From contig JANHCV010000006.1 of the NCBI GenBank assembly GCA_025594325.1, positions 124,001 to 188,000 of the forward strand: a stretch of DNA of 64,000 bases, in the 5' to 3' direction. Position 1 is the first letter of the stretch; each line of letters starts with the position of its first letter. The notes below the pieces were generated by a model. It had not been told where the DNA came from, made no database searches, and saw only the letters and a program-made list of their open reading frames with translations. Origin of the DNA: Blastocladiella emersonii ATCC 22665. Taxonomy: Eukaryota; Fungi; Blastocladiomycota. The translations under genes and the position numbers were made by a program. This document shows, in pieces, positions 29,906 through 41,050 of the stretch.

Positions 29906-30289
29906 CGGATCCAGGGTCACGTGACGTTCAACTCGGGCCGCGCCGCCCGCTTGAGCACGCGCCGATCCACCCCTGCTGCGCCTGCACATGAATGTCTCGA
30001 GCAGCCACTACTTGCAATGCACTCGGGAGGCTCTGATGTACACGTTGGTGGGTCGGATGAATCTAATAGTGTCCCTTGGGGCAAACGGGTCGGCGGCAGC
30101 ATGCTGCACGGCGCTGCGCCCCCCGTTGATGTATCCTAACTTCGCTGGTTGTCTTTGCCATGGCTGAGCGCACAAGATGATCCAGGTAGAATTGGGTTTT
30201 GAGCTGGCCCAGAATCCACGTCGCAACGCGTCGCGGCCCAACCATGCGCGGCATGGCGTTGGCTCACTTTTGATCCCATTCAGCGACTC

Positions 30290-32680
30290 CCGTGAGCCGT
30301 GAGCCCCGATCTATGTTGCTGTTTATTCGCGAGACAGATTTCTGGCGGCTCAGCGCGACATGGTGCATGGTTACGCGCCCTCTAGTGCCACCACTTCCGC
30401 CAATTCTTCCCTGTATGTTTTCCAAAGAATCCGGAGGCCTGTTTTGTATCGACAGTCTTTACCGTTACGATGCCCAGCGGCCAACGTAGATGTTCGGAGC
30501 GGCGCACCTCGCTGTCCAACGCCTTGCCAACATTCAAATCAGTCCTTGAGCTTTAAAGGCCCTACTCGTCTCTCCTCTGTAATCTTCTGCTTGATTCCAT
30601 GTCGTGGTGGCACCAGGGCGCGGCTTGCTCACTTCTTGCACGAGGCGCCGTCCCGCATACACAACTTGACGTGCCCAAATTCTCCTCCAGGTACTGTAAC
30701 TGATCGTTTTCGACTTGCTTGCCGCACTCGTGTTCTCCAACTTGGCTTTTTTTAGCTGCAGCGCGAGTACAAGCGCAGCGGCTACGCTCACGCGCTCTTC
30801 CTCTTGCTGGCCAACCTCGTCGTCGTCAAGGACGTGCAGCAGATTTCCGTGCCCTCAGTCAGCGACAAAGCACAAGCGGCTTGCGTCCCACACTACGACG
30901 CCACGGTCGTAAAAACGCGCACGTTCGCCATCGCCGCCAGTGCCATGTGAATTCGCAGGAAGCTCGTGTTTGCCCCGCGCCAGCTGCTGGCGCTCACGGC
31001 GATGCAGCCGCTACTCGTCCTCCGAGAGCCGATGCCCGCCATGGTCCGCGACTACTACCACGTGAACTACGAGCACGGCATTTTCAACGGCCTTGGTCTT
31101 GTCCCGCCAGGCGCGTCGCGCCACTCCGCGTGACTGGCGCGTACTTTGACACGGACGCGCTTCGTGTGCTCCACGTAGCGCAGATCAGCACTCTTGCTGA
31201 TGGTGCAGCGCGCGCCGAGCGCCGCAGTGGTGGTAGCATGTTGGCAACAAGAACGAGGACCGCCATGACAGCTGCCGGCCGCTGCTCAAGCCCAAGTTTG
31301 CCATCGCTGTACTGGTTCTTCTTTGGCCTGATCCCGGCCGTGTTCGTCTGCCTCACATCTGTGGAGGAGGCGCCCGTCGCGCTGTACCAGGCCACCGCCA
31401 TGCTTGAGGTCGTAATGGGCAGGGGCAGTCTCTCGCTCTGCTCTCACTTCATCATCTAGGACGGCCATCTGCATCTCGCGGACCTCGTGCTCCCCGACAT
31501 GACCGCCGCGTAGCAGGTTCGCGTCGTCTTCATCCCGCCCTTCACCCCGAACCAGCAGGTGCTCTCGCGCGCAAGTTCTACAACGCATGCGCTGACGTCG
31601 CCGTCGACACGGAGCACGTCCTTGCTCGGGCCGCTGATCCCGCGAGCGTCAAGGAGATGATGAGCAGCGCCCAGATCTCGCCGCGCCGCGAGGATGACAA
31701 CGACGACCCTGCTGATCGTGCTCTCGGTCATGAAAGTGGGGAGCGCCGCGACGCCCGGCATCGCGACCGTGAGGAGGAAGGTGAGGATGAGCAGCAACAG
31801 CAGCGCCATGGCCACGCCGTCGCAGCCGCCGAGGATCGCCAAAACGCGCGCGTGGTCGTCGACCCCGTGCCGCTCGAGGTGCACGGCACTGCACCGAGCC
31901 CAGCGGAAAGACATGGAAAAGGAGATGATAGAGCTGGCGATGAAGGTAATGGTGGGAAGAGTGGCGACGTTCCGCTTGTCAACAAGGCGTACGCGGTTCG
32001 CCAATCCGGTCAGTACCTGCACATTTACGAGGAACTCTCGCTCGCTGGTTCCTTCCCGCGCGACTCTCGACTCTTTCCGTGGGGACTCCGCGGTTGCAAC
32101 TCGGAACTCGACCAGCGCTACCAGGCCTCCTCGGCCGAGGCGCACTGCGAGCACCTGCTCCACCTCAGCGATTCGCAGCGCGTCGGGTTCATCCTGTTCG
32201 CCTTCGACTACGTGCGCACGCAACACCTGACGCAGAGCGTCCGCCTGCGCGTGCGGAGCCTCCAGAACACGCGCTCGCGGCCGCGTCCATCTCCCAGGAG
32301 GAGCTCCTCGCGGCGTACGATCTGCTCGCCAAGCAGCAGCTCGCCGCGTCGCGTCCAGAAGCTCGACGTGGCCAACATGCAGGAGTCGTCGCCGCTGCGG
32401 CTTCATCAGTTGCAGCACGACACGGCGTCGACTCCTGCGGCCAGCACCGACCGTGGTCGCGTCGCGAATGAGGGTCCGCCGCCGTGCCCTGGTCCGCCAC
32501 CAAGTTTGCGAGGACCGCATGTTGTAGACACGGTTTCGGCGACCCTCACCCACGCGCAGACGAGCAACAAGGAGCGTAGGCTGTGCGGCCAGTGCGTCAC
32601 GGTGCTCGTGAAGACGCTTGACGCTTGGCCACCCATACCTGCAACGCTCGCTTGCGCTTCTCATCTCGGCCAATGGTAAG
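30290..32680 (+). pseudogene. Decayed intron-containing gene of unknown family
   Basis: Protein-like fragments with host codon usage (LQREYKRSGYAHALFLLLANLVV..., QYLHIYEELSL...HCEHLLHL...) broken by stops and frameshifts; intron-like GTACTG...TTTTAG at about 30691-30755. Confidence 0.4.
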
Positions 32681-33745
32681 CACGCTGCCGTGGAACTTGC
32701 AGCAGTCGCTGTAGACAGACGTTTGGGTCGGTCGTGTAGCGCGATGCCAAGCTCCTTCTCAAAGTGATCCAGAGCAGGCACTTGATAAAACCGTATATTT
32801 GACGGCCATCTCAGTCTCAGCTGTCCGTCAAGATGACCATGGCCGGTGGGCTTCCAGCCCTCCTCATGGCGTGGGACGCGAGCGGACGCGAGCTGGCCCG
32901 TCATGGGAATTGCAGTTCCGAGGCCCTCCAATAACAGTGCGCAAAAAGCATGACCCTGTACCATGACTCTGAAAAGTCTGTGAGCGAGTCAGAACGTACG
33001 GCATGCTAGACATCAGCGGTGGAACGTACGCATGCTAAGGCACTGTCTAGGATCGCTAGGCCTCGGGCTTCAGAAAAGGAGAAATGCGAGTGCGCTAAGA
33101 AACTTTCTGTTGGTATCGGTATCACGCCTGATTGATCGATGAGTGATGTGACATACCGCGTCTATCTTTTCATTCTTTCTCACCGGATTTGGGCTTCAAT
33201 AATGGAGCATGTATGCTATCCCTCAAAAAGCCAGGTGTTTCCTTCGAAGTAAACGGCGAGCGGGAGCGAGACACGCACCTCGCGTTAGGCTCCAACCTAT
33301 TGAGATCGTTGACCTCGGATGTGCTGATTTTGTCTGCAATTCCACGACGATTGGGCTGGTCAACGGGGACTCTCAACAGTGGAAATCGCTACGACGGTTG
33401 GTCGAAATGCAAAAGGAGCAGCTGATGGTAATCAACGTTTGAACTGGTGCTGACGTCGCTCACGCTTGGTGGGCCGCATGTCTCACGGCGTTGGTCCAAC
33501 AACGGAAACGCAGCGGAGCAGCACCAAATATCCTCTAGTTCTCAGCCGCATTCAAACCTGCAACGAGTGCGGCTCAAACAGTGAAGTGAAGTTGCGCATT
33601 CGAGGGCAGGTAGTACGAACAGTAAAGAATCTGCCGCCCCGCTCAGTTCACTGTGCCGAGTTTACTGTACCCAAGATTACTGGGCGGTGGCAAGCGGCTT
33701 TCACTGCGCGGCCACACTAGAAACAGTAAAATCACCTGTCCCGAT

Positions 33746-33753
33746 TATATAAA
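33746..33753 (+). promoter_or_regulatory. TATA box of the GTPase gene
   Basis: TATATAAA about 80 bp upstream of ATG 33830 in an otherwise GC-rich context. Confidence 0.6.
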
Positions 33754-33829
33754 GGTCTGCCTCGCCGGGCCCCAACTCGTTGCTCCAGCATCGGCACAAC
33801 AGCAGTTCCACATTTCCTTCCTGCCAGCC

Positions 33830-34810
33830 ATGACGAACGAGGCTTCCCCCTCCGCCCACGCTTCCAAAGTCCGCACCATGGGCATGGTCGGCTATGGCAA
33901 GTCGACCACGCTCAACCAGCTTCTCGGGTACAAGGAAGACCGCGGGGGCAAGCAGGTGATCAAGCAGGTCTTCGCCGCCGGATCGGCGGCCAAGGGGATC
34001 AAGACCAACATGGCCCGCCAGTTCAACGTCAACCCGACACTTCTCCCCGACAGCACCGACCTCATCGTTTCTGACTCGGAGGGCATTGGCAGCTCGGCCA
34101 ACGACAGCGTCCAGGTCGCCGACTCGATTCTGGAACTGCTCAAGAACGATCCGGCGACGCTGCTCATTGTCCATCGTTTCCACCGCACCGACATGCCGTT
34201 CGTCCGGGTGCTCCAGATGCTCAAGGTTTGCACCAACATCAGTTCCAGCAACTGCTTCCTGTTGCTTACTTTTGCTCAGGACCACGACATCGAGGTGTCT
34301 TCGTTTGATGCCGACCCGAGCCGGTTCTTGGATGAGCTCAAGGCCAACCACGGCATTGACTTTTTCGACGCGGAGCACAACGTCATGTGCATTGATATGG
34401 ACTCGCGTGCTGCCAAGATCCCCGAGCTCCGTACCCAGCTCCTAGCCCGCATGCCCGTCAAGGCCAGCATGACGTACTTGGAACTGGTTGCGCTTGCCAG
34501 CAACAACCACAGCAACGCGAGTGACGCCGTGAGCAAGCTTCGGAAAGAGCTCGCGGACGCTGAGTCTGACCGCGGCTGGCACGAGCAGCGCATCAAGGAC
34601 CTCAACATTGCCATTGCGTCGACTGGTTGGATTCCGTTTGTTGGCACCATCTCGGCAGCGGGCATGGCTATTGCCGTTGCGTCAAGTATCGACAGCGTCA
34701 AATCGCTCAACAAGAAGATTGCGGACCTCAGCAAGAAGGCTCAGAACGGACGTGAGTCCCAGGCTCACTACTTGGCCAAGCTCAACGAGTACAAGGCCAT
34801 GATCCAGTAG
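33830..34810 (+). CDS. AIG1/GIMAP/septin-like TRAFAC GTPase with C-terminal coiled coil-hydrophobic segment-coiled coil (326 aa, intronless)
   Basis: G1 GMVGYGKST, G2 Thr (GIKTN), G3 DSEG, G4-like LLTFAQD; hydrophobic IAIASTGWIPFVGTISAAGMAIAVASSI flanked by heptad-rich helices. Confidence 0.75.
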   Translation: MTNEASPSAHASKVRTMGMVGYGKSTTLNQLLGYKEDRGGKQVIKQVFAAGSAAKGIKTNMARQFNVNPTLLPDSTDLIVSDSEGIGSSANDSVQVADSILELLKNDPATLLIVHRFHRTDMPFVRVLQMLKVCTNISSSNCFLLLTFAQDHDIEVSSFDADPSRFLDELKANHGIDFFDAEHNVMCIDMDSRAAKIPELRTQLLARMPVKASMTYLELVALASNNHSNASDAVSKLRKELADAESDRGWHEQRIKDLNIAIASTGWIPFVGTISAAGMAIAVASSIDSVKSLNKKIADLSKKAQNGRESQAHYLAKLNEYKAMIQ

Positions 34811-36320
34811 ACGACGCGTTGAAGCGGCGCAGCGAAGTGCAGCGCCGCATGGTTCTGACTTGCATTTCCCTACTTTACAGGGTAGTACTCATATCGAATA
34901 TACACGGTCAAAATTTCTTCTTCGCGGGAATGATGCATTGAGAAACAACCACATTTTTCTCGTTCACGTTTCAGCAAATCAGCGGTTTTGCTGGAGATAC
35001 AGCGCAAGCGGGTGAGGGAGTGTGCGGCTGCTTCCGCGGGTAAGTGTGGCGCGACGCGTCCGATCCGGGACACAGGTGATATCGCGACGCGTCTCCCGCG
35101 CCTCCCGCCGCCACGCGTGCTGCTGGCCGAATTGACAAAATGGGGCCTCGCAAAATGGTCCGAAAGGTAAAAACTAATGATCAGGTCACGAGGTCGTGGA
35201 ATAAAAGAGTGCGGGCAGCTGATACGTTCAGGAGTGACTGACATTCTTCAGTCTGAGACAGAGGAATGCATTGGATATGATTCCCGGATGATCGACACAG
35301 GGGTCGACCACCGGGTACCCAGCGCACCGTGTCCCAGTCAGTGGTCTCATCCCGACCCTTGCGTACCAACGCCCCGCATCTTCTTGTTTGCAAACCCAAA
35401 ACAAGTTACCAACGAGGAGCGCGTCACGCGCACCGTCGAAGCACCAAGAGCATTTGGCGATGGGTTAACAACTCTGGAGCCGACACCAGCAGCGGCCCGT
35501 TTCCGACTTGGTCGACTTCCTCGTTCAGCCAAGGAGGCAGTCAGGCGACCAGGGCTGTTCTTAGAACTTGCGGAGCTGCACCGTTTCGACATCACCTTCC
35601 GTCGAGAGGGAACGTCGTACTGGGCTGACATCCAGAACAAATCCACAATTATTGCGATCAGGCTTTGCTCAAGGCGCGGAACTCGGTGCGTGACGCGTAA
35701 AACATGAGACCCGCCGCGAAGTACGCTCGCTGGCTCGGACTTCATCCTCGATTGCGTCGATCTTGACCGCAACAACTTCGTGACGAACGTACCAATTTCT
35801 TGGCGGGAGCTGGCCACTGATGGCGACGGGCAGATCCTTTGTGACTGATGTCTGTTCAGTTGTGGACAATGCTCCCAATGGACACCAATCATGATGGACA
35901 GCAGCGGCCGAGGTGTTTTGTGAGCGACTCGTCCATCGCTCCCGCTGTCCGGGATAGCGACGAAATCCCCTTTGAAGTCTGGATAGTGGTGTCGCTTGCT
36001 GTGCTGGTTGAAGAACGACTGAGCGTCTCTGCTTGTGGTTTTGACGTTCAGGGACCATGCCTCAGCGTTGGCTGCTGTTGCTGGCATACGCGGCGATCTG
36101 TACGATTTGTAGTCGCGCCATGTTTAGCGCGTGATCGTTCAACAGCAGTAAACTCTTTCAACGAGTTGTATCGCAGTGCGGCGGCGGAGTTTCTTTGCTG
36201 AGGATCAGCGAGCGCATTAGCTCGATCAGCGCTGTCAGCAGGTCCGAGTGAGCGAGAACCAAGTCCAAGGCAGACAGCACGTGGGGCAAATGATCATATC
36301 ATCTATTACCACACGACAAA

Positions 36321-39300
36321 CTACGCCCGCAACGCGCGTCGCACGTACTCCCACACAAGGATCGCCGCCGAGTTGTGCACGTTGAGCGAGCGGGTGTTGC
36401 CGAGCTGCGGGATCTCGATACACACGTCAACGATATCACCCGCCGCAAGCAGGTCCGCGGGGACGCCCTCCTTCTCCTTGCCGAGCAGCACGATCACTTT
36501 GGCGGGCATCTCGCCCATGGCATCGAGCCGGACCGACGCCGACGTCTGCTCGAGCGCGACGACGGTGTAGTGGTGTTCGCGGCGCATGGTGCGGAGCCAG
36601 TCGGCGAGCGCGGGCCCGCGGGGCACCTCGACGAGCGGGAGATGTCGGTCTGCACTGACGGCGAGCGCGCGGAACGTCGGGTCGTCCTGGACCCGTGCGC
36701 TGTGCACGGCGAGCGCGCGCACGCCAAAGATCTCGCACGTCCGCGCGAGCCCGCCGAGGTTGGTCGCGAGATCAACGAGCGACGCGCACACGATCAGGTC
36801 CAGGCGGCCGCGCGCGCCGCGCGTCCGGATCGCCGCCTGTAGCCGCGTCAGCTTGTCCTCGTCCGACACGGGCTTGGCGTTGGTGTCGCTGGAAACGGCC
36901 TCGCCCGCCGCGTCCGCGTGCAGCATCGTCGCCATGGCCGCGTTGATCTTGCGCTGCACGGGCATCGCGGGCGTGTTGGCCGTGTCGATAGTCGCCGTGG
37001 GCGCCGGGGGCTGCACCACAACGGAAGCGGCTTCTGCGACCATGTTGCGACCGCCCTTCTTGGCGCCCGCGACAGCTGCCGTAGCCGCCGCCGAGTCCGC
37101 GATCCGCGCCGACGCGGGTGGGGCCGATGTCACCGCAACGGGCTGCGCGGCGACCACGTCGGGCGCCGTGGGCGCGATGGTCGGGTCCTCGATCGCGTCG
37201 TGGCGGAGGTACACGGTGCGGGTCGGGTCAGCGAGCGCGACGATCGCGCCGCCCTCGTCCTGCGGCACCACGCCCGCGAACGCGCGCGAAGAGATAAACT
37301 CATCGGGCGCCGTGTCGGTAGCGAGGCGCGGGAGCATGTGGAAGACAAACTCCCAGGTGCGGTCGCGTACTGGGTGGAAGTCGTTGGCGAGGTAGGCGGC
37401 GAGGAGGTACTTTGCGTTGAACTTGACGCAGTCGCGGTTGGTGCGGGTGTACGCGACGAGGGCGGCGAGGTCGGGGCGGCCGAGCAGCGCCGCGAGCGCC
37501 GGGTGAGAGTCGCGGCGCCGCTCGCACACGGCCCAGGTCCGCCCGAGCACCCACTGTGCGTGCAGGCGCACCGTGAAGTGGTTGGTCGCGAGCCACGGCG
37601 TCGTGTGCAGGAACACGAGCGTCGCGAGGTCGGCGAGCGCGCGCGGGACGTCCACAGGGTTGGCGGCGGCGCCGGGCTGGTCGACCCAGTCGTCGAGCGC
37701 GCGGACCAGGTGTGCGACGACGGCCATCTTGGACGCGACCGTCGACGCGCGGTCGTTGTACTTGGTCAGGTCCGCAAAGACGCGCGGGACGCCCGCGTCG
37801 AGGTTGCGCAGGACGAGCAGCGCGAGGAGCCACTCGTAGTACGGGCGCAGGTTGATGGCGGGCTCGGCGTCGAGCAGGCCCGCGACCGCTTCCACTAAAC
37901 CGGGCGCGGCAGCGGTGGGGACGCACGCCGGGTGGCCCGCGAGCACGAGAAGCGTCGACAGCAGGCGCAGCTTGTGGCGGTTCGGCCCCTGGTTCGGGAA
38001 CTCGAGCCGCGGGTGCAGCTGCGGGTCGTTGACGAGCACGTCCATGAGCTTGGCGAACAGCGCGGGCCCGTGGACCGGGTGCGCGCCGAGCCGCGCCGCG
38101 AGGTCGTTGGCGAACACGCGCACGCGGTAGTCGGTGTTGGCGCCCATGCCGTCGGCGTCGCCCGAGGACGGCGCCAGGACCGCCTCGAGCTTGCCGAGCC
38201 ACACCGTCTCCTGGCGCTCCTCGTCGCGGTCGCGCGCGGGCCCGTACTTGAGCCACTCGACGATCGATCCCGAGTACGCCATGACGAGGTCCATGTCCTG
38301 GGCGAGCGTGGCGTGGACGGCCGCGACGGCGCGGTCGACGACGCCAAACTTGGTCGCGCCGAGCGCGAGGATCTTGCCGAGGTACATCTCGACGGCGGGC
38401 CGCATCGTGGGGTTGCGGACGAACCGTGGCGCGGCCACGAGGTCGAGGAACGCCGGGTACAAGATACCAAAGTGGCGCGGGATCGAGGCCGCGGCCGCGA
38501 CGAGGTCCCACGCGACACCAAGGGCGCGCGAGAACTGCTCCGCGGCACCGTTGTCGTCCATGCACTGCGCGACGCACCGGATCAGCGGCGCGCTGCCCTC
38601 GCGGTGGTCGTTCTCGATCTCGTCAATCAGCGAGTCGACGAGGTACGCCCGCGCGCGCGACCCGGGCTCGGTCAGCGCCAGGACCAGGTCCCACTTGGCC
38701 GACGTGAAGTGTGTCACGAGGTCATTCCACGGCACGGTCGTGGCGGCGGAACCTGTGGGCCGCGTCAGCGTCGCGGTCAGGACCGCGGATACGTTGAGCG
38801 CGGCAGCGCCAATACCCGCGAGGACGGCGCCGCGCGTCTGTTCGGTGGCGAGAAGGTGGCGCAGCGTCACGACGGCCAGAATGCGGGACAACTCCGACTC
38901 GATTCCGCCCGACGCCGGTGCGAATAGCGTCTCGTACGCCGCCGTGGCGATGGAAGCCGCGTCCATGAACCGGGCAAACACGGGGGCCGCGCGCTCGTAC
39001 AGCTCGAGCGCGAAGTGGTCGTTGACCTTGCGCGTGGCCATGGCGAGGTACGCGGCAACCTCGTTCCCGACGGTCTCGACGAGAGCGGTGTCGCCGAGCG
39101 AGACCACGAGCGCGATGCGGAGCTCGGGGACACCCGGCGCGAGGTACGGGTGCGTGTAGACCTGGGCCGCGAGCTCGGCGATCTCGACGGTGACGGCAGC
39201 GCGGTCCGCGGAGTCGAGGCAGGCGACGAGCCGCGCGAGCCACGCTGCGTCCTTGACAGCGACCTCGAGCGCGCGCGGGGTCGTCAGGTACTCGGCGACG

Positions 39301-41050
39301 TGCGAGAGCGCCGCGTCGCCGATTCCGGCGTGCGCGCGGACCCAAGCGGCGAGGTCCGGGTGGTCAAAGTACCGCAGCGACGCGAGGACCGGGGCGACGC
39401 AGGACGCAGGCTCGGCGCCCGCAACGCGCTGGGTGCGCACGAGCACGTCGACGACGAGCCGCTCGAGGAGGCGGCGCGAGTTGTCCGAGATGGGCGACAT
39501 GTTTCTGCACAGCTTGGCAACCTCGGTTGCGCCACCGGGCAGGGCGAGCGGGGTCTCGGCGCACGTCTCGGCGACGCCCTGGAGCCCAAACAGAAGGAAC
39601 ACGAGCGAGCGTGTGTCGCGGAGGCGCGGGAATACGAGGTCGGCGAGCGCGGCGCGGCGCGTGAGAAGCTGGGCCCAGAACCGCGCGACTGACTCGCCGA
39701 ACGGGCTGGCGAAGGCGCCCTGCACGTTGACGGCGTACAGGACCGTGGGCTCGGTCGCGGTGATGAAGCGGCCGAGGAACGCGGGCTGCGCGGCGAGCGC
39801 GTCGAGGGCGGGACCCCGCGTGTCGAGGATGAACTGCATTACGAGCTTGCGCGAGGCGAGCGAGTCGTTGAGCAAGCCGTGCTCGAGGACGACGAGCCAC
39901 CAGTCGATGGGCAGCGGCGAGGCGGCGAGGTGCGTCTCGAGCATCGGGAACGCGGTGCGCACGAGGTGGTGGTAGGACTCGGCGACGAAGTCGTAGGTCA
40001 GGAAGAAGGCGTCCCACGCGGCCTTGAGCTTGGGGTCCTGCAGCGGGAACAGCCGGCTCGTCGCGCCGTACGTGGCGCGCAGCCGCGCGGGCATCTCGCA
40101 CACGAGCTCGGCGAGGTGCTTGACGGCGTGCAGCGCAAACTTGCGCGGGGCCGGCTCGGCGTGCACGAGCGCGGTCATGAGGAGGGCGAAGAAGGAGTCG
40201 TCGCCGAGCACGCGCGGGAGGACGACCGGCGACTCGAGGACGGGGAGTAGAGCGGCGACGAGCTGCGGCGCGTCAATGGCGACGGCGGGCGAAGGTGCCA
40301 TGTCGAGGAGCCGGCGGTACACGGTGTCGACGTGCGCGGCGGCCCACGACCCGCGCGACTGCAGCTCGCGGACGAGAACGGGGAGCAGCGCAATCGCGGC
40401 GCCGCGGACCTCGCGGTCAAAGCACACGACGGCCGCGACGGCGATCTCGAACAGTCGGTTGATGGTGCTGGCCTGCAAAGCAGCAGCCGACTCGGCGAGC
40501 AGGCGCGATGCCATTTCGAGGCCCTCGGCGGCATCCTGGAAGAAGGCCAGCGTCGAGGCAGGGGCAATCGTAGCGAGTGCCGACGGGAGCGGGATGAAGA
40601 ACGAGTGCTCGGCGAGCGATGCCGCGAGCTGCACGACAAAGGCGTCCTGGTGCCCTGCGTTGCGCGCGAGGAACAGGCCGTAGACGGACTCGAGCAGCGC
40701 CTTGCCGTTGGCGTCCAGCGCGTCGAGTCGCTGGTAGACGGACTGGAAGCTCAGTAGGAGCGTATCGAGCGTGTCCTATACGTCCCGTCGTGTGAGCGCT
40801 GGCCTCGTCCGCTCTGCGACGGGATCACGCGTACCGCGGGAACATCGTGGGTGTCGAGCGTTGCCTTGAGGAGATCGTGGAGCGGCTCGAGGGACGACTT
40901 GTCGGTCGCGGCAGCGCACTGCTCGCCAAAAAGGGCGGCGAGCTGGCCGAGCGGCAGCGCCTGGACGAGCTGCCGTGTCAGCGGATCGAGCGGTTACATT
41001 CGTGATTCATGGAGTTCATTTACCCTGGCGACGCTTGCGAGGACTGACAT
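36321..41050 (-). CDS. TRM3: tRNA (guanosine-18 2'-O)-methyltransferase Trm3/TARBP1 (exons 41050-41024, ~40972-40835, 40775-36321)
   Basis: C-terminal SpoU domain LIVCASLVDLATNLGGLARTCEIFG...LLGKEKEGVP...IEIPQLGNTRSLNVHNSAAILVWEY after a long helical N-terminus. Two upstream introns reconstructed with canonical sites. Confidence 0.9.

Follow-up and report, generated by a model that had tools for sequence, protein, structure and literature searches.

GTPases of the AIG1/GIMAP family are recognised by an AIG1 domain with the motifs G1–G4, a G5/IAN motif and a conserved box between G3 and G4 (PMC7053062), which in GIMAP proteins is combined with a coiled coil (PMC7053062, PMC8857920). GIMAP2 is targeted to lipid droplets by a double hydrophobic domain, GIMAP1/3/5 are anchored through their C-termini, and dimerisation regulates the GTPase activity of GIMAP proteins (PMC8201404). 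The family is patchily distributed, and surveys report that it is missing from representative fungi, yeast among them (PMC7053062). Here, we investigated a gene of the blastoclad fungus Blastocladiella emersonii ATCC 22665 that lies on the plus strand of a 64,000-nucleotide stretch of DNA (hereafter the window; contig JANHCV010000006.1 of assembly GCA_025594325.1, positions 124,001 to 188,000), where an uninterrupted open reading frame (ORF) of 326 amino acids begins with its first ATG at 33830 and ends with a TAG at 34810. The original prediction, made from the DNA letters, had described this gene as a stand-alone GIMAP/AIG1-like GTPase with a membrane-inserting hairpin and as a candidate immune or conflict effector. 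Our comparisons support the view that the encoded protein is a highly diverged AIG1/GIMAP-like protein, related to the known families by remote and transitive homology, with a C-terminal helical stalk that carries an uncharged hairpin at its tip.

The link to AIG1 was made through environmental intermediates. The seven intact family members of B. emersonii were combined into a profile (A1), and an exhaustive search with it against 1.84 billion representatives gave only 24 matches, made up of Blastocladiella and Allomyces proteins and 12 environmental proteins. The strong matches comprise the B. emersonii paralogues, B. britannica KAI9219436, Allomyces javanicus KAJ3346710 and KAJ3359447, and one JGI metagenome cluster, and the 12 weaker ones (E 3e-12 to 1e-4) are unnamed JGI/Logan proteins that match mainly over the C-terminal third; the environmental protein P0014 is matched over its full length (E 2.9e-12). 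By Pfam, the N-termini of these environmental proteins qualify as bona fide AIG1 domains, with 60.3 bits for P0014, 56.7 bits for P0021, and P0016, P0019 and P0020 likewise above the cut-off. When both alignments were cut before residue 212 so that only the N-domains of the blastoclad and environmental proteins were compared with hhalign, they still matched with 97% probability (E 1e-10, 190 columns), so that the AIG1 link does not depend on the shared tail. A mixed profile of blastoclad and environmental members found GIMAP4 first in the PDB (2.7e-16), followed by GIMAP7, GIMAP5, Toc33 (~3e-9) and GIMAP2, and then by immunity-related GTPases (IRGs) and septins, and a language-model search of the ESM Atlas returned nearest named clusters that were all AIG1 (0.93, 171 shared features). 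Simpler searches reached less far: the first word-based protein search retrieved own-genome proteins only, the target protein alone found no match in a PDB sequence search and only noise in an NCBIfam scan, and a six-frame search of the whole genome detected no canonical AIG1 domain above the cut-off. A word search that used the aligned environmental proteins was overwhelmed by P-loop words and uninformative, and one with the module region of P0015 added a single further protein, P0035.

The G domain (residues ~12–205; 33863–34444, plus strand) has the alpha/beta fold of a P-loop GTPase in the AlphaFold2 model and in the structure comparisons based on it. The protein starts with a short leader, and the motifs named in the original prediction are present. 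The G1/P-loop GMVGYGKST (residues 18–26; 33881–33907) agrees with the AIG1 pattern GxxxxGKS/T, its K24, S25 and T26 being invariant in the B. emersonii family and its GxxGxGKS form common to this family and the environmental AIG1 relatives, and T59 is a possible switch-I threonine. The G3/Walker B motif DSEG (residues 82–85; 34073–34084), with D82, G85 and G87 invariant, conforms to DxxG and aligns to the DTPG of the environmental AIG1 proteins, the relatives having DTPG or DGDG at this position. Between G3 and G4, the strand PATLLIVHRFHRTD with the invariant R119 (34151–34192) aligns to the LLLVxxLGRYTEEE conserved box of GIMAP4 and GIMAP7 in the profile–PDB alignments. The G4 position is occupied by an atypical TFAQD (residues 147–151; 34268–34282, within LLLTFAQD at residues 144–151), in which T147 and A149 are invariant; the paralogues have TKAG here and the environmental relatives NKxP. 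In the G5 region, N184-V-x-C187-x-D189 is invariant at the expected strand. The GIMAP G5 motif is of the FNN type, which this is not.

The AlphaFold2 model was built from 28 sequences and supersedes an earlier 7-sequence model that left residues 1–80 unmodelled. It predicts, with a mean local confidence (pLDDT) of 84 and a predicted template-modelling score (pTM) of 0.72, an alpha/beta G domain with strands at 12–19, 35–44, 78–81, 109–116, 142–147 and 185–187 and helices between them, followed by a helix-turn-helix stalk. Foldseek ranked GIMAP7 first (2.8e-8), then GBP5, GBP1, MFN2, GIMAP2, Irgb10, SMG9, IniA and Toc33/34. The fold is that of a TRAFAC GTPase with a helical extension.

The C-terminal ~110 residues are modelled as a long antiparallel stalk of two helices. 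Stalk helix 1 (residues 216–257; 34475–34600, plus strand) ends in W250-H-x-x-R-I-x-D257 and belongs to a predicted helix spanning 216–265 (pLDDT >90). It is followed by the hairpin LNIAIASTGWIPFVGTISAAGMAIAVASSI (residues 258–287; 34601–34690), which is rich in Gly, Ala and Ser and has a predicted turn at G266–F270, and then by stalk helix 2 (residues 288–323; 34691–34798), which runs antiparallel to helix 1 within a predicted helix spanning 271–323 (pLDDT 92–96). The hairpin contains no D, E, K or R in 30 residues, consists of A, G, S and T to 53%, has a Kyte–Doolittle hydropathy (KD) of 1.49 and includes the GWIPFVG element. The two long antiparallel helices of the model, 216–265 and 271–323, together with their heptad pattern, would provide the coiled coil expected of a GIMAP protein; 75–82% of the a/d positions of the tail helices are hydrophobic, with the best register in helix 2 (82%). 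The order of coiled coil, hydrophobic segment and coiled coil that had been read from the letters is thus real, and it is strongly conserved in the relatives. In a joint alignment (A2), all blastoclad and environmental members possess the module, which reads T-[WFY]-x-E, ~30 helical residues, D-[IR]-x-W-H-x-x-R-I-x-D, [IL]-A-x-x-S-T-x-W-I-P-x-x-G, x5-G-x3-A-[IV]-x-x-S and a second helix. T215, W250, R254 and S286 are conserved at ≥90%, with W250 and R254 nearly invariant across 20 family members. An uncharged run of 20–50 residues (30 in the target, 39 in P0025 and 50 in P0035), about half of it Ala, Gly, Ser or Thr and with a KD of 1.0–1.9, recurs in nearly all relatives. The arms on the two sides of the WIPFVG turn of the target measure ~8 and ~16 residues, which as modelled is too short for crossing a bilayer twice and compatible with a monotopic wedge. 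Pfam has no family for the module (only coiled-coil noise and DUF5955 at E 0.02–0.1), and a search of the ESM Atlas with the module alone gave no usable match.

From these results we favour, at slightly better than even confidence, a hairpin-anchored and highly diverged septin-like (TRAFAC) GTPase of the AIG1/GIMAP-Toc branch that dimerises on nucleotide binding. The hairpin would dip into a single leaflet of the membrane of an organelle or lipid droplet, much like the double hydrophobic segment of GIMAP2, and the G domains would pair once nucleotide is bound. Homo- or heterodimers among the nine paralogues of the genome could then assemble into a switchable scaffold on the membrane, to be dissolved by hydrolysis. 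Candidate processes are organelle homeostasis and cell-autonomous defence; the turnover of copies, the two pseudogenes and the repeat- or transposon-rich settings described below fit an immune or conflict role, on which the purifying selection is neutral.

Several observations weigh against this reading. The protein itself scores below the Pfam cut-off of 27 for AIG1 (PF04548; 13.5 bits, E 0.046) and below the Pfam threshold for MMR_HSR1 (13 bits), and a PDB search with the Blastocladiella-only profile found no GTPase. The name GIMAP/AIG1-like given by the original prediction therefore holds at the level of remote homology (hhalign, GIMAP4 in the mixed profile and GIMAP7 in Foldseek), and fails by the Pfam model on the protein itself. 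Re-ranking of the structural matches with VIA gave Z 13–15 over ~170–190 residues to EngB, Era, IRGs, Toc34, GIMAP7 and MFN2 alike; because VIA fails to separate the TRAFAC GTPase families from one another, a clade cannot be read from the fold alone, and the AIG1 assignment rests on sequence profiles. Guanine specificity and hydrolysis are putative, since G4 is TFAQD without NKxD and G3 is DSEG rather than DTPG. In the GIMAP7 dimer, the conserved-box arginine acts as the catalytic finger, a part that R119 might play as well, although the similarity of the PATLLIVHRFHRTD box is partial and the alignment of R119 with the GIMAP arginine is accurate to one position only. For a membrane segment, the hairpin is of borderline hydrophobicity (KD 1.6 over 19 residues).

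Set against the described systems, the target shares most with GIMAP/IAN proteins such as the membrane-anchored GIMAP2 and the self-activating dimer GIMAP7: a small septin-like G domain, helical or coiled-coil segments, a hydrophobic anchor in the C-terminal region, a conserved-box-like strand with an arginine, membership of a multi-copy and duplication-prone family, and the best profile and Foldseek matches. It differs from them in lying below the Pfam AIG1 threshold, in having DSEG and TFAQD where GIMAPs have DTPG and a T/NKxD-type motif, and in placing its hydrophobic segment non-terminally, at the tip of a stalk of two antiparallel helices, with WHxxRIxD and STxWIPxxG signatures that occur in no Pfam model. 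Toc33/Toc34 belong to the same AIG1/Toc clade, have a dimerising G domain with an interface arginine and a C-terminal membrane anchor, and are matched both by the PDB profile (at the ~3e-9 given above) and by VIA (Z ~14 over 185–194 residues). The G4 motif of Toc GTPases is THAQ-like, and the TFAQ of the target can be compared with it as T-x-A-Q; however, the fungal host has no plastids, the membrane anchor of Toc proteins is a single tail and not a coiled-coil hairpin, and a direct sequence match between the two was not detected. The environmental AIG1 proteins with a hairpin (P0014, P0016, P0019–P0021, P0024 and P0035 among others) are alike in whole architecture, in the C-terminal module and in their homologous N-domains, and differ in their canonical DTPG and NKxP motifs, in passing the Pfam AIG1 threshold and in forming a separate clade across a long branch.

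The gene does not stand alone, as the original prediction had supposed, since the 32.65 Mb assembly contains nine copies: the target (contig C18), copies at 97% (C3) and 75% (C5) identity, and six at 27–32% identity. Because it is clearly not a conserved single-copy housekeeping orthologue across fungi, the idea of an immune or conflict role survives this test. The six distant paralogues (L004–L009, on C15, C5, C6 and C4) carry a phase-1 intron inside the P-loop (GxVGxG / KST) and were aligned and searched via their second exon only; the intron is absent from the three-copy clade of the target, which could reflect loss of an ancestral intron or retro-copying. Two of the distant paralogues on C4 stand in tandem, ~3 kb apart, and L004 and L006 each have one premature in-frame TAG where intact paralogues have Gln or Ser. 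Between the target and the C3 copy, dN is 0.013 and dS 0.10 (nonsynonymous and synonymous divergence; dN/dS 0.13), and between the target and the C5 copy dN/dS is 0.24 (0.18 in the G domain and 0.30 in the tail). The whole-gene range of 0.13–0.25 points to purifying selection and does not indicate diversifying selection; together with a conserved promoter, it indicates a functional gene that evolves by duplication and loss. Two neighbours of the paralogues were recorded as well. Directly 3' of the TAG-disrupted paralogue on C15 lies a gene (L004:2595–3944; C15 ~1555850–1557190) that encodes an MLKL_N domain (48 bits in Pfam) and, C-terminal to it, a protein kinase domain (121 bits), i.e., the architecture of an MLKL-like cell-death executioner in a blastoclad fungus. 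A relic of a PIF/Harbinger-type DDE transposase (DDE_Tnp_4, 35.5 bits; L007:76–552) adjoins the tandem GTPase pair on C4.

The maximum-likelihood tree, calculated from 20 sequences after fragments <240 amino acids and two redundant rows had been left out, separates a blastoclad from an environmental clade with support of 100/100 and a stem of 1.34 changes per column. Within the blastoclad clade there are two subfamilies, one consisting of the intronless target group and the metagenome protein P0007 and the other of the intron-bearing copies and both Allomyces proteins, and the B. britannica protein takes no settled position between them. Because the subfamilies are shared with Allomyces, the family is older than the Blastocladiella–Allomyces split. 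Judged by the sequences searched, it is restricted to the Blastocladiomycota and a few environmental eukaryotes. A search based on P0021 found one metagenome contig of 2.9 kb and 35% guanine-plus-cytosine (GC) content. An environmental family member is encoded there by a lone intronless ORF between two non-coding flanks of ~1 kb each, an arrangement that looks eukaryotic; the same search of viral contigs found nothing.

Several other explanations of the architecture have to be weighed against a hairpin-anchored GTPase of the AIG1 type. The hairpin is rich in small residues, as are the hairpins of colicins and ApoL, and has amphipathic helices on both sides, and GIMAP, IRG and GBP GTPases have established roles in immunity. 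Such features would suit a GTP-gated defence effector whose activated hairpin inserts and oligomerises into a pore, causing cell-autonomous death or damage to a pathogen membrane, as would birth-and-death evolution (recent duplicates, pseudogenes for two of the nine copies, repeat- and transposon-rich surroundings) and the MLKL_N-kinase gene next to one pseudogene copy. Pore formers of the colicin, Bcl-2 and ApoL kinds, however, have two hairpin helices of ~20 residues in an amphipathic bundle, whereas the uncharged segment of most family members is too short for two transmembrane (TM) helices, its 30 residues in the target amounting to ~13 per arm, only two helices follow the G domain of the target, with arms of ~8–16 residues, and the predicted structure shows only a two-helix stalk without a shielding bundle. 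With no sign of diversifying selection in the whole-gene dN/dS and no defence-family match in PADLOC, we consider a membrane-permeabilising effector unlikely, and neither the pore-former layout nor the GTP gating of the original prediction finds specific support, as 30 uncharged residues without a surrounding bundle do not provide two spanning arms. A bolder version, which we hold to be just as improbable, is that the conserved module of coiled coil, WHxxRIxD, STxWIPxxG hairpin and coiled coil would be an unrecognised membrane-inserting effector domain of a cell-autonomous immunity or cell-death system in zoosporic fungi and some protists, in which GTP-driven pairing of the G domains triggers insertion and membrane damage; if true, it would work as a compact counterpart of GBP/IRG or MLKL-type executioners. 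The order of GTPase, helix, hydrophobic hairpin and helix also parallels the HR1-TM-TM-HR2 arrangement of mitofusin, with the anchor distal to the G domain, and MFN2, MFN1 and IniA are among the Foldseek and VIA matches, which might suggest a miniature membrane tether or remodeller of the mitofusin, atlastin or bacterial dynamin-like (BDLP) kind, with G domains that dimerise in trans and a stalk tip in the bilayer. Members of that superfamily nevertheless have much larger G domains, four-helix bundles and, in its fusogens, two full TM helices or a paddle, compared with a G domain of ~195 residues without dynamin-type insertions and a 30-residue segment here. The MFN matches have root-mean-square deviations (rmsd) of 12–16 Å and are driven by a generic G domain and long helices, rmsd values to this group exceed 11 Å in general, and the sequence profiles favour AIG1 and reveal no relationship to the dynamin superfamily, so that we give this tether little credence.

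The borderline hydrophobicity of the segment (KD ~1.0–1.9, 50% Ala, Gly, Ser or Thr) and the degenerate G3 and G4 would be in keeping with a protein without any membrane association, in which the small-residue segment would pack tightly at the tip or in the core of a soluble coiled-coil oligomer, with the G domain as a nucleotide-binding but non-hydrolysing pseudo-enzyme or adaptor. Against such a soluble protein, which we regard as quite unlikely, stand the retention of the uncharged 20–50-residue run in nearly all members despite sequence variation, the runs of 39–50 residues in P0025 and P0035 that are typical of membrane segments, and the invariance of the P-loop, DxxG and R119. The origin of the locus was also in question, since the original prediction had allowed for horizontal acquisition. 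A recently acquired gene island would agree with the lower local GC (0.51–0.61 vs ~0.70) and the patchy distribution of the wider family, but two old subfamilies are common to Allomyces and B. britannica, the GC at third codon positions (GC3) of the target is host-like (0.81), the GC is low where repeats and non-coding DNA lie, and the deeper paralogues have a spliceosomal intron in the P-loop. Recent horizontal transfer is thus disfavoured, and on these comparisons an acquired island seems very improbable.

In kind, a hairpin-anchored AIG1-like protein would not be new, as coiled coils and membrane anchors have been described in AIG1/GIMAP GTPases before (PMC7053062, PMC8857920, PMC8201404). 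New are a strongly diverged, lineage-expanded AIG1-like family of the Blastocladiomycota that is missed by standard domain models, and a conserved stalk-and-hairpin module, common to rare environmental eukaryotic AIG1 proteins, that is part of no current family. The module offers a handle on GIMAP-type membrane attachment and on defence versus organelle use in early-diverging fungi.

The coding sequence comprises 326 codons and the TAG (33830–34810, plus strand), and the position of its start deserves attention because the public models of the target (P0001) and of the C5 paralogue (P0002) have 310 amino acids each and begin at M17, right before the P-loop. A conserved promoter block (33722–33754, plus strand) consists of AACAGTAAAATCACCTG at 33722–33738 and a TATATAAAG box at 33746–33754, which lies 84 nucleotides 5' of the ATG at 33830, so that position 33746 belongs to the promoter and not to the coding sequence. 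The upstream block AACAGTAAAATCA(C)CTG, a spacing of ~7 nucleotides and TATATAA are kept in all three intronless copies, even in the 75%-identical C5 copy, whose flanks have otherwise diverged, and the start context CATGACG is the same in all three. Nucleotide similarity to the C5 paralogue (blastn) spans 33829–34809, exactly the coding sequence. Because of this edge, the promoter block, the conserved CATGACG and the placement of residues 12–19 in strand beta-1 of the predicted structure, ATG 33830 is likely to be the real start, and the public models, which would truncate strand beta-1, probably begin 16 codons too late and are corrected accordingly here. No intron needs to be assumed in the target, as its homology to the relatives is collinear over the full length, and the earlier description as an intact, intronless gene with a TATA box stands.

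The gene is part of a segmental duplication of ~2.4 kb (33585–36021) shared with contig C3, of which blastn comparison of the window with the own-genome DNA (C3, C5) showed 33585–35130 at 95.6% and 35173–36021 at 90% identity; the C3 version has ~2 kb extra between its two parts. Over ~32750–36250 the GC is 0.51–0.61, compared with 0.65–0.73 on both sides, and the GC3 of 0.81 in the target compares with 0.92 in a neighbour gene. The low-GC island of the original prediction is indeed lower in GC, but its flanks are repeat units rather than simply pseudogenes. Upstream, 30200–32910, which had been taken for a large decayed gene and contains two long overlapping ORFs without a Pfam domain, is repeated on the same contig at a distance of 1.2 Mb (96%; C18:1374562–1377674) and again at C1:833244–834457 (86%). 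Downstream, a dispersed repeat at ~35490–35850 has at least 20 old copies on many contigs (64–74% identity), and the second decayed ORF reported at 35173–36021 is likely to be the remnant of an old transposon and not a host pseudogene. The island is thus a patch of repeats and of non-coding sequence that surrounds a duplicated gene. No Pfam domains were found in the large flanking ORFs around the target. Farther downstream, where the GC is back to ~72%, an intronless ORF of 1437 amino acids on the minus strand (36321–40634) ends in a SpoU methylase domain (Pfam, 78 bits) and resembles a tRNA 2'-O-methyltransferase of the TRM3/TARBP1 type.

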